From Podarcis gaigeae (Eukaryota), in NCBI GenBank assembly GCA_964106915.2, contig OZ066920.1: a stretch of 64,000 nucleotides of DNA; one strand, 5' to 3'. Every line of letters starts with the position of its first letter. The stretch's first letter is position 1. The position numbers and the translations under genes were made by a program. The notes under the pieces were generated by a model. The model ran no database searches and was not told the DNA's origin. It saw only the letters and a list, made by a program, of their open reading frames with translations. Shown here piece by piece: positions 12,595-35,300 of the stretch.

Positions 12595-12766
12595 ATTGAA
12601 TTGTCTTTGTATTTTTGGATCTGCTGTAAGTTCCCTCAGATTCATTCCTTCATATATGTATTTGTTACACAAAATATCAATTTGTCTCATGAGATTATAA
12701 TTCTTCAATTGCATGTGATCTGAGCATAAATTCAAGCTTTTTAGACTGTTGGTGTTCAAAGTGATA
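12595..12766 (-). pseudogene. Pseudo-exon
   Basis: cttctccag|YHFEHQQSKKLEFMLRSHAIEEL*.., later LQQIQKYKDNS; multiple stops. Confidence 0.45.
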
Positions 12767-12959
12767 CTGGAGAAGATTACAGGTGATAGTTTGGGACAAA
12801 AGGATGACAATATCAGGAGAATCAGATTTCATGAGCATATATAAGGATGAAAAATATTAGGAGAATGCATAATAACATTGTAACCATGAAAACAGTTTTT
12901 TTAAAAAATGCTGCATGCTGATTTGATAAAAGTATGATGGATTTCATTATGGCCACTGG

Positions 12960-13070
12960 AGAAAGATCCTGTCTTGTCTTTGTAGCTCCAGTGTGAAACT
13001 CAAATGTTGCTTCTGTGAAATTTCAGCAGCTGCTCTACTTCACTCTCTAACATTTTGCTGCTGCTAATTC
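12960..13070 (-). pseudogene. Pseudo-exon (weak)
   Basis: catatttag|ELAAAK.., with fragments ESEVEQLLK and TLELQRQDR in other frames; donor unclear. Confidence 0.35.
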
Positions 13071-14312
13071 CTAAATATGGCAAAGGAAAGACAGTTTGTT
13101 TCCCCCTCCCTCATAAAACGATAACAATTCATTATATAATAACTAAGGCAATACCAACAAAAGGGGAATGGGATTTTATGGGCAGCACATAAGGAACATT
13201 TTCAAAAGCTAGCACACAATACACTAAATAATAAAGAATTTTTTTGGGCTTTTATTTTTTCAAAACTCAGTTCCTTGAAAGCTGAACAACCAGTGTTATG
13301 GGGGATTAAAGAATTTGGCATATAAAAGACCTGTTAAAAATAGCTGCTAAAGATCGAAAACAGCTTTCCCCAGAGGCCACGTTTTACATTTTTCAATGTC
13401 TAGCTCCTTTAAAAAATAATAATAATAATAAAAGGTGATGAAGAACAAAGCCAAACTCTAGTGGGGCAATTCACTTTCTATGCAAAACTTTTTTGCTTGC
13501 AGTTATTGATTGAAGCCAAAAGCAGCCATACGTAGATCAAGATAGGAGCTACAATAAACTGGTTAGTTGATGAAATTGTTGTGTCTAAAAATCATATGTT
13601 CCTTATCTGATATTTCCCTTTAGATGTAGAAAATTTGGGGGGGTGTTATCAGGACGCTCTGCATAAAGTGTACGTATCACTACATGCCCAGCCCTGAAAG
13701 AGAAAAGTCCATACTTTATTCCTCAAGTGGGTAAATGTTAAGAGAGAAGAATCCAAGTTTCATGATGCAGCAGCACAAAGCTGGGAAGTGAAAATTATGT
13801 TGCAGCAGAGTCTTGAAAATATGACTGTAAAAGTTAATCAATAAAATGTCTATTCCTGTCTATTCACTAGGGGCCCCAGCTGCATAGCTTCACACAATCG
13901 ATACTACAAATTATTACGATTTCCAGGTTCCCACTGGACATTCTGAACAAATCTTTCAAGTGTAACAGGCTTACATAGTGGGGTTGTTGTAGCTGAGCTT
14001 GCCCCCCCCCTTTCAAACTTTACATGTAGCTCGTCCAGAATAAGTGGTAATAAAAATCTTAAAGCCTGTGAATTTTCTACAGCTGTTAAATATTTGCTTT
14101 CTGGCCTACCTATGCCTTGTTGGGTGTTTTCTTCATTTCATGCTACATCAAATAAGGTAAAGCATTACTTTGTACTCATGTTAGGAACTCGCATTGTGGT
14201 AACAATAGAGGAGATAACTTTGCACATGTTGCTTTTGCACATGTACAAACATGCCACACAATTTGAAATAGATTGCTGAACGGAAAACAAAATGGAATAA
14301 CTTCTCACCTAC

Positions 14313-14379
14313 CTGTCCTCTGCAATCTCCATATTTTTTCTGCAGACCCCACCCTCCCTGAACTTGCCCGTTCACCATA
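14313..14379 (-). pseudogene. Pseudo-exon
   Basis: ggttttcag|TAT.. ending GLQKKYGDCRGQ|gtaggt; 67 nt. Confidence 0.45.
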
Positions 14380-14896
14380 CTGAAAACCAAGTTCTTAGTG
14401 AGTTTCAGTGTTGGCACAAAGCTCATTTAAGTTGCTGCAGTTAGTTAGGGCTGCTAAAACCAGTGTTGCCATTTTCCCAGGACATTACCCTGACTTGCAA
14501 GGATCCCCCATCCATGCTCATAGCATGTCCTTGGCTTCTGTACATCTTCTTAGCAATGAAGGAGGTTGGAGAGGAAGCTTTCTTCCAGCTAGGGTGTGCC
14601 CACCTCTTCTGCTGTAGAAATGGCCCTTTATAATCTCACTGCATGGATATGGGGAATAGCTCCTCTCTAGCAGTTGCTCAGACAGTGAACCTGATACTCC
14701 CATAGACATTGCAAATGCATAGAGCTTTGGGATGAGAGAAATGTGGGAGCATGAGCTTTGCTTCATGACTAGCTGCTACAGGGAAAAGGTTTCTCTTTCT
14801 TGTTGCAGCTACAATGTAGTGAGATTATGGGTCAATTTAAATCAGGGGTGAATCCAAAAGTGTCTTCCAATTTGGGAGGTCATTTTGCTACATACT

Positions 14897-33960: not shown

Positions 33961-34135
33961 CTGTTTTATATGAATCTTCTGTTCATGCTCTAGTTGCTGG
34001 TTCACTTTCTCAGCATGATTTCATCAATCTTTCTGCTCAATGCTTCCCCCCTATTCCTTTCCTTTCTTTTCTTAATGCCCACTGCTCATGCACCTACCTC
34101 ACTCTGCAGACTTTCTCTAGTTGAGTATACATTTT
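33961..34135 (-). pseudogene. Pseudo-exon
   Basis: ctag|AA AAT.. gives (E)NVYSTRESLQSEVGA*..., then frameshifted NHAEKVNQQLEHEQKIHIKQ|gtatta. Confidence 0.65.
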
Positions 34136-34303
34136 CTAGTTAAGTATAATTACCACAGTTACCTGAATTTTCAAGTTAAACTTTAATACGCATCACATGC
34201 TAAAATACAGGTAGCACATTTTCAGGTTCTAATGAAACTCTGTAGCCACAAATTATTCCAGTACCACTGATTAACACATATTATTAATCTGAACTCAATT
34301 TAC

Positions 34304-34554
34304 CTGTAGATAATTTCTCCCAAACTTTCATCTTTCTCCTACTCAAACCTCTTTGCAACAAAGCTATATACGTCAGCCTTCCACAACTTGGATGTTTTCC
34401 CAACCTGGGTGCCCCCTGGCACTGACTGTGTGGGACTACAAGTCCCATCAGTCCCAACCAGCATGGTCAATGGTCAAGGATGATGAGAGCTTTAGTTCAG
34501 CAAGGCATCAGGTTGGTTGACATGGTCTACATTGTCTAACTTTTAAGCCGTTCT
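34304..34554 (-). pseudogene. Pseudo-exon split by a MITE
   Basis: Acceptor tttttggatag|AG AAC; MITE at about 34375-34525; then LLQRGLSRRKMKVWEKLST G|gtaaat (phase 1, matching the next exon). Confidence 0.55.
34375..34525. mobile_element. Palindromic hAT-like MITE (related copies at about 30620-30740 and 33440-33645)
   Basis: ggactacaagtcccatcag..gatgatgagagctttagt core shared among the copies. Confidence 0.65.
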
Positions 34555-34644
34555 CTATCCAAAAACACCCATGACTTTATGTCAATGTTCCTTACGGAAC
34601 ATAATAGGAGCATGACCAACACTCAGGCAAGACAATGAACTGAC

Positions 34645-35300
34645 CATGCTGCCTCAATATAGTCATGCTCCATGTTGTACGGATGTCTGGTAATTGTCTT
34701 CCAAAGCAACTACTCTATTCCAAACTTTAAAATGAAAAGCGTAATGCAAAAGAGGTCAGCAAAAGAGGTTTGAAGACACTCTCAAGGGAAATCTTTAAAA
34801 ATGTAGTATAAACACTGAAAACCAGGAAACACTGGCTTGCGAGCACTCCAGTTGGAGAACAGCCTTTACCAAAGGTGTCATGGGCTTTGAAAACGCTTGA
34901 ACTCAGGACGAAAGGGAGAATGATGCTAAGAGGAAGGCATGCTTGGCAAACCCTCACCATGATCAACTCCCACCCAGAAACCTATATCCCCGCTGTGGAA
35001 GGACATGTGGATCCAGAATTGGCCTCCACAGTCGCTTACAAACTCATTGTTAAACCGTGTTCATGAAAGACAATCTTATTCAGCTATGAGTGATCACCAA
35101 AGAAGAAGAAGCTCCAAATCCAGCACCACTCTGGCTCTGTCACAAACGAGTTCACCTAGCTCTCTCCTCCTCATGAATGAAATGTTGAAAGCTTCCTGGA
35201 TGTTTACTAACACTTAGAGCTTGACTTACATAGTTACAAACTCCAATAAGCAGTTCATTTTCATGTCCTCTTATGCATGAAAGCCCTGGATCCCTTGTAG
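34645..35300 (-). pseudogene. Pseudo-exon split by an RTE insertion
   Basis: VIMLQGIQGFHA*EDMKMNCLLEFVTM*VKL*VLVNIQEAFNISFMRRRELGELVCDRARVVLDLE stops at 35111 at the RTE tail. It resumes beyond the insertion (frameshifted MTILRQH) and ends at G|gtcagt at 34645. Confidence 0.55.
34673..35110 (+). mobile_element. RTE-clade LINE 3' fragment (non Bov-B)
   Basis: Degenerate HVVRM..LPKQLLYS..QQKRF, remnant C-terminal C2H2 (CGRTCGSRIGLHS), (GAA)n tail, TSD gctcca at 34667-34672 and 35111-35116. Confidence 0.85.

Follow-up and report, generated by a model that had tools for sequence, protein, structure and literature searches.

The window analysed here is a 64,000-nucleotide stretch of contig OZ066920.1 (assembly GCA_964106915.2) from the lizard Podarcis gaigeae. 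Between about 18.1 and 24.4 kb, its minus strand carries the remains of three exons of a gene for a coiled-coil protein, which we call exons A, B and C. We favor the view, to which we would assign a probability of roughly 0.7, that they are the relic of an ancient vertebrate gene that has long been dead and whose exons have been held as conserved non-coding DNA. The three exons and the evidence by which they were delimited are as follows.

~24407-24122, minus strand: relic exon A, from tblastn with turtle, stork, skink and shark proteins and from alignments A2 and A5
21948-21722, minus strand: relic exon B, from tblastn and alignments
18287-18105, minus strand: relic exon C, from tblastn and alignments

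For the searches that support this assignment, each exon was queried singly rather than as part of a spliced model. When exon B (21949-21815, minus strand) was compared with 1.84 billion proteins using HMMER, it matched P0004, a 240-amino-acid "uncharacterized" protein of the flatback turtle, and short open reading frames (ORFs) running from exon into intron in other reptiles and birds were also recovered. A cluster mate of P0004, the 378-amino-acid loggerhead protein P0008, aligns in three collinear pieces to the minus strand of the window (tblastn), with E-values of 2.9e-17 for exon A, 4.3e-8 for exon B and 6.1e-12 for exon C. The identical three pieces are matched by proteins from the turtle Mauremys (P0015), a stork (P0016), a skink (P0017), a frog (P0021) and a shark (P0019), so that the exon peptides fall in order along one protein, represented by P0008 and its relatives. 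Long relatives of the gene with open frames survive in a frog and a shark.

Much of the splicing architecture is still legible. Exon A shows clear homology in its 3' two thirds, from about 24379, and ends at an intact donor GT (24121-24120). Exon B retains both its acceptor AG and its donor GT, and exon C, the best conserved of the three (83-89% identity to turtle, stork and mammals), has both splice sites intact. The introns have been kept, at 2.2 kb between A and B and 3.4 kb between B and C, and the order and orientation of the exons are collinear with the turtle and bird models. A first-pass annotation, made from the letters of this DNA without database searches, had already recognized part of this structure: the two peptides it quoted lie at 24193-24122 and 18285-18217 on the minus strand, in stretches bounded by AG and GT, and two of its proposed junctions, 24122>21948 and 21722>18287, have AG and GT in place and equal the splice joins of turtle and bird models. 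Other parts of its gene model fall away. The junction 25513>24250 does not survive because position 24250, its supposed acceptor, falls within exon A, with homology continuing upstream to about 24379-24407. The compatibility of exon phases holds locally and fails overall, since exon B measures 227 nt in the window vs 247 nt in turtle and birds. The proposed span of 12.6-35.3 kb contracts to the roughly 18.1-24.4 kb given above, and the segments at 34304/34135, 25513 and 12595-18100 lack homology to the gene even by targeted low-stringency tblastn. Searches of this kind across the window yielded no credible upstream exon with Mauremys residues 1-80 or shark residues 1-165 as queries, and no credible downstream exon with loggerhead residues 246-378, alligator, or frog residues 78-395. 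In both the window and the skink, homology to turtle and stork begins only inside exon A, and both have lost the upstream exon found in Mauremys and loggerhead. As for "exons" D and E of the loggerhead, they show no conservation even to crane and are probably not ancestral.

A few stretches around the relic attracted our attention in their own right. At 33903-34043 (minus strand), 13 kb upstream of exon A, the window shares a block of 83.7% identity with the stork locus (L004 24939-25078); it has one coiled-coil-like frame, with stops in both stork and lizard, and could be the relic of an upstream exon or a mere conserved element. Two more blocks, at 38131-38513 and 29088-29260, align to the stork locus upstream of exon A at 75% and 74% identity, with no coding signal evident. 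Within the B-C intron, 11 codons at 19422-19454 (minus strand) are identical to skink model P0017. They lie inside a conserved block that is 77% identical to skink, and thus appear to be intron sequence taken up by that faulty model.

Stops and indels, which the first-pass annotation had likewise reported, are present in the assembly sequence of all three exons. We read the lesions from the assembly and located them in multi-species alignments (A5-A7).

24406-24447, no strand: (GA)n/(TC)n microsatellite, from Tandem Repeats Finder (TRF) and alignment A5
24338-24336, minus strand: in-frame TAG in the 5' part of exon A, where other species have TGG, CAG or CTG
24257, minus strand: +1 T insertion and frameshift in exon A, absent from skink, turtle, birds and mammals
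24223-24221, minus strand: in-frame TAG in exon A, CAG in all other species
junction 21932/21931, minus strand: 22-nt deletion and frameshift in exon B, where the skink has only a 6-nt in-frame deletion
21812-21821, minus strand: 1-nt deletion after 21820 in exon B, also present in the skink and the species of protein P0002, followed by TGA at 21814-21812
21744-21743, minus strand: +2 (GG) insertion in exon B, in the window only
21724, minus strand: +1 G insertion in exon B, also present in the skink
18196-18188, minus strand: frame break in exon C, with a +1 at 18196 in the window only and a 5-nt deletion after 18188
18159-18157, minus strand: TGA in the entry frame of exon C

The microsatellite occupies the site at which turtle and birds have the polypyrimidine tract and acceptor of exon A. 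Read in frame from its first base, exon B meets its first stop at TGA 21852-21850. Exon C also has an in-frame 3-nt deletion, and its 5-nt deletion after 18188 is shared by the skink, there balanced by a -1. Judged from its sequence, with at least one stop or frameshift in every exon and with the upstream exons and the exon A acceptor gone, the lizard copy is predicted to be incapable of encoding the protein.

The first-pass annotation proposed this damage as a candidate lineage-specific loss. According to that view, the relic would be a recent unitary pseudogene peculiar to this lizard or its family, with the gene intact and functional in other sauropsids, a reading we now regard as very unlikely. 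Several lesions do belong to the window alone (the TAG codons at 24338-24336 and 24223-24221, the +1 at 24257, the 22-nt deletion, the +2 at 21744-21743 and the +1 at 18196), the skink has an uninterrupted ORF in exon A, and stork and loggerhead have open frames in exons B and C. However, the skink Lerista edwardsae (L002) carries stops and frameshifts of its own, comprising +1, +1 and -11 changes in exon B and a +1 and an AGA>TGA change in exon C, and it has two exon B indels, the -1 and the +1, in common with the window, so the damage is not private to this lizard lineage. A third species, which is probably a squamate and is represented by P0002 and P0013 from Logan contigs, has the same exon B -1 and ends at the same stop. 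The two indels common to the window and Lerista, together with the -1 and stop in the P0002 species, indicate that the gene was disabled before these squamates diverged. The skink "hypothetical protein" P0017 (L002 10001-16319) is itself a read-through of the broken relic: it starts in an intron, crosses the frameshifted exon B and takes in the intron before exon C.

Damage to the gene extends to mammals. In goat (L005 7404-7577) and pangolin (L003 3983-4170), exon A has a common CAG>TAG change near its end and a donor altered from GT to CT, and this shared stop and donor loss suggest that the loss is old and goes back at least to the ancestor of their two laurasiatherian orders. Exon B is wrecked in both species, with an identity of 77.6% vs a regional neutral level of about 78%, whereas exon C is 98.4% identical against the same regional figure of about 78%. 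An open and nearly identical exon C peptide is present in whale, hyena and goat, and the pangolin has a 1-nt deletion near the 3' end. Both exon C splice sites are kept in all seven of the seven species compared, and in whale and hyena it is an exon of "uncharacterized LOC" models.

Birds and turtles also carry lesions, which likewise speak against a loss restricted to this lizard. In the crane Grus japonensis (L006 11352-11615), exon B is interrupted by an in-frame TAA. Relative to the frame of Mauremys and shark, the loggerhead Caretta caretta (L001 38265-38429, 10517-10530) changes frame within the A-run of exon A, and it has a stop in a downstream exon whose counterpart in the frog protein is residues 188-242. 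The frame is also shifted at this A-run in stork and crane, and the gene models of birds and turtles skip or truncate around the points of the crane TAA and the loggerhead lesions.

How the surviving exons have changed provides a further indication of what is being conserved. Among loggerhead, stork, crane and goat, exons A-C contain 76 variable sites, which are spread over the codon positions in the proportion 27:25:24 (p = 0.91 vs a uniform distribution), and the absence of codon periodicity among turtle, birds and goat is one more point against a lizard-specific loss. Between turtle and birds, synonymous divergence (dS) is 0.025-0.13 vs a nonsynonymous divergence (dN) of 0.04-0.08, and between sauropsids and mammals dS is only about 0.2 (ratio 0.4-0.8), well under saturation. 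Turtle and stork exons are 90-96% identical vs 71-81% for alignable introns. Flat codon positions, together with a dS about equal to or below dN within clades, argue that the exons are conserved as DNA and not as protein. Exons A-C are, in other words, conserved above the local background without a coding signature. This DNA-level constraint may reflect a regulatory element, an exon of a non-coding transcript, or both.

An alternative to the ancient death of the gene is that it was lost several times independently. A working copy would then remain in some turtles, crocodilians and birds after separate losses in squamates (early) and in mammals, and the low dS would result from overlapping regulatory elements. 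The RefSeq model of Mauremys, open over 340 amino acids, fits such a history, as do the open exon C and spliced B+C models of alligator and many birds, and a bird entry named PMFBP1 suggests a long RefSeq model. The frameshifts in the A-run, moreover, may be sequencing errors. We nevertheless consider repeated loss unlikely. In the crane, exon B contains a TAA, and several bird models leave out that half-exon; the loggerhead stop lies in the exon matching frog residues 188-242, and frog residues 80-187 are without a detectable turtle counterpart. Moreover, dN equals or exceeds dS within sauropsids and variable sites are flat over codon positions.

Some of the same observations, and others, weigh against the long-dead relic that we favor. 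The A-run frameshifts of loggerhead, stork and crane are possibly homopolymer assembly errors, the Mauremys model P0015 is open across four exons, and some birds or turtles may possess a long, intact and functional gene. The support for the lesions is at the level of assemblies. Indirect support comes from run X3, which contains 0.99 of the sampled words of 18000-25700 but may be the assembly's own sample; for lesions common to another species, assembly error is no explanation. Ratios of dN to dS are hard to interpret under overlapping DNA-level constraint, and the counts behind them are small (76 variable sites). As for the address of the locus, taken up below, the Pfam family Pex2_Pex12, to which the neighbor of the whale exon C model belongs, also covers PEX10 and PEX12, which weakens the assignment of that neighbor as PEX2.

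The surroundings of the relic are themselves strongly conserved. By blastn, the window from 3.9 to 24.4 kb forms 14-17 collinear blocks with the loggerhead, skink, stork and pangolin loci, with identities of 80-97% between the lizard and turtle, stork or pangolin along the chain, and many of the non-exonic blocks are more conserved than the relic exons. The blocks and the two runs of N that interrupt the chain are given here, without strand.

3904-4230, 5969-6302, 9299-9529 and 9678-9829: further collinear blocks, 74-90% to turtle, stork and pangolin
13697-13990: ultraconserved-type non-coding block, 95.6% to pangolin (13701-13973), 95.8% to stork and 92.8% to turtle
20493-20712: N run of 220 N in the B-C intron, with a flanking block 90-94% identical to pangolin, turtle and stork
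20713-21011: conserved non-coding block, 90-94% to pangolin, stork and turtle (90% to pangolin over 20713-20984) and 91% to skink
22809-22919: conserved non-coding block, 94-97% to turtle, stork and pangolin (96.6% over 22828-22916)
22920-23085: N run of 166 N in the A-B intron, with flanks 94-97% identical to turtle, stork and pangolin
23086-23243: conserved non-coding block, part of the collinear chain

For comparison, the alignable share of a 17-kb turtle sequence is 27% with pangolin and 58% with stork. The intervals orthologous to the N runs measure 168/166/168 nt vs 166 N and 220/220/220 nt vs 220 N. Because the lengths of the N runs equal the orthologous spacing and their flanks align collinearly to turtle, skink, stork and pangolin, the sequence can be taken as continuous across them. 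Each run sits at the core of one of the conserved blocks and has the appearance of a highly conserved element whose center was masked. The idea that they hide exons was rejected, since the orthologous intervals of turtle and stork hold no model exon.

This chain also bears on whether the relic could be a duplicate pseudogene, with an intact paralogue or orthologue elsewhere in this genome. The 64 kb of this genome that were read give no direct support for that proposal, and we judge it highly improbable. The flanking conserved blocks lie in the same order and orientation as in turtle, stork, skink and pangolin, which marks this as the ancestral locus, and the introns have been kept. The collinear chain thus argues for a unitary relic and not a dispersed duplicate. 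In this respect the first-pass annotation, which described an intron-containing and probably unitary pseudogene of a coiled-coil gene, is supported: the relic retains its introns, occupies a syntenic position and is not a processed copy.

The likely address of the locus comes from the whale, in which the model containing exon C starts 7.7 kb from a gene of the Pex2_Pex12 family in divergent orientation and spans 338 kb. ZFHX4 and PEX2 lie within one topologically associating domain, and ZFHX3 is the paralogue of ZFHX4 (PMC11326360). The HNF4G/PEX2/ZFHX4 region ranks among the largest ultraconserved non-coding clusters, with 79 elements (PMC3436827), and the region used for computing ZFHX4 elements is hg19 chr8:76.57-79.01 Mb (PMC6129273). 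Taken together, the whale neighbor and this literature suggest that the relic locus is probably the ZFHX4/PEX2 conserved-element cluster. PMFBP1, the gene with which the first-pass annotation had compared the relic, immediately adjoins ZFHX3 (gene order in PMC5784682). The relic does not occupy the orthologous position of PMFBP1, between DHX38 and ZFHX3 at 16q22; in the whale the exon C model adjoins the Pex2_Pex12-family gene. With the locus probably on the ZFHX4/PEX2 side, the relic is at most a paralogue of PMFBP1 of the ohnolog type.

Names attached to related sequences provide some leads as to the identity of the gene. One bird entry containing exon C (Limosa, P0036) is called PMFBP1 isoform x1, which we treat as a lead only, and the RefSeq names of the turtle genes are "uncharacterized" or "UACA-like". 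In Pfam searches, neither the exon peptides nor the turtle, bird, frog and shark proteins gave anything beyond sub-threshold matches to generic coiled coils. The ESM Atlas returned generic coiled-coil neighbors (GCC2, HMMR and CCDC18 fragments) with feature sharing at chance level, and no neighbors for the pangolin tail; a profile search of the PDB gave no match. Word searches with P0008, alignment A1 and the frog C-terminal region, covering only proteins of 0.55-1.75 times the query length, found short "uncharacterized" models and no full-length named orthologue. We use PMFBP1 ohnolog as a candidate label, which we would put at even odds at best.

Several known systems resemble the relic in part. 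It shares its coiled-coil composition with PMFBP1 and CCDC18, two long proteins of this type located in the sperm neck and centrosome. PMFBP1 adjoins ZFHX3 and the relic lies on the side of the paralogue ZFHX4, making an ohnolog relation plausible. However, the relic locus is not the PMFBP1 locus, and whereas PMFBP1 is a working gene in mammals, the relic is broken in goat and pangolin. A second parallel may be offered by non-coding RNA genes built on dead protein-coding genes, such as Xist from Lnx3: the splice sites of exon C are kept and are used in the whale and hyena models although exons A and B are dead in goat and pangolin. Two runs from other organisms, X1 and X2, guessed to be RNA, contain about 5% of the words of 18000-25700, which could come from transcribed relic exons or from conserved blocks.

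A further precedent is given by the exonic remnants of genomic regulatory blocks, where bystander genes have vanished but their exons persist as conserved elements (Dong et al. 2010, PMC2831330). These remnants lie in the regulatory block of a developmental gene, as the relic probably does, and like the relic they are conserved without coding constraint. They differ in that they followed the teleost duplication and the other copy retains the gene, whereas the relic would be a unitary loss in amniotes and its regulatory role is putative. Persistence of exons as conserved elements is thus known for teleost duplicates (PMC2831330), and here it would concern the loss of a single-copy amniote gene. 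The ZFHX4/PEX2/HNF4G ultraconserved cluster (UCNEbase; PMC3436827, PMC6129273) is matched by the dense blocks of 90-97% identity between lizard and mammal and by the PEX2-family neighbor in the whale. A difference is that exon C, at 83-89% identity to birds and mammals over its full length, falls under the usual 95% cut-off.

In the history we favor, a coiled-coil gene would have been disabled before the lineage of this lizard split from skinks, and the same gene would have been disabled in goat and pangolin and damaged in crane and loggerhead. Its dead exons would persist under constraint on the DNA, whether they act as regulatory elements or belong to a non-coding transcript, rather than under selection for a protein. 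The relic is embedded in a dense chain of conserved non-coding sequence, which is most probably the ZFHX4/PEX2 regulatory block. One elaboration, which we hold tentatively and place somewhat short of an even chance, is that a PMFBP1-like ohnolog once lay beside PEX2 and ZFHX4 and that its exons have survived the death of the gene for hundreds of millions of years. After the gene was lost in mammals, squamates and apparently at least some birds and turtles, exon C would have remained near-unchanged, as would exons A and B in sauropsids, as part of the ZFHX4 cluster or of a non-coding transcript.

If this proves true, a bystander gene that died would have left its coding exons as conserved elements throughout the amniotes. 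The persistence of lost-gene exons in a developmental regulatory domain bears on the origin of ultraconserved elements, and the lesions are datable, so that the squamate -1 and +1 and the mammalian stop and donor loss can be used for timing the loss. A lizard-specific loss of a sperm or centrosome protein would have touched reproductive biology, but that reading does not hold. There is also a practical consequence, in that annotators mis-call the relic: skink P0017 and several "uncharacterized" proteins of birds and mammals are read-throughs.

In general character, the window is genomic DNA of squamate type that contains fragments of BovB and L1 and has a GC content of about 40%. Stretches at 51093-51281 (minus strand) and 61283-61435 (plus strand) match the repeat-derived N-terminus of stork P0016, which resembles the tail of a CR1-like long interspersed element (LINE); they were rejected as parts of the relic and are taken as repeat instead. 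Rfam found only one piece in the window, resembling a tRNA-type short interspersed element (SINE); this tRNA match, at 26939-26995 (plus strand, 33 bits), is most likely the head of a tRNA-derived SINE. Two ORFs are presumably remnants of further LINEs: by eye, the 144-amino-acid ORF at 11674-12108 (minus strand) resembles the C-terminal end of a BovB-type reverse transcriptase, and the 186-amino-acid ORF at 45916-46476 (plus strand) resembles the C-terminal part of an L1-type ORF2.

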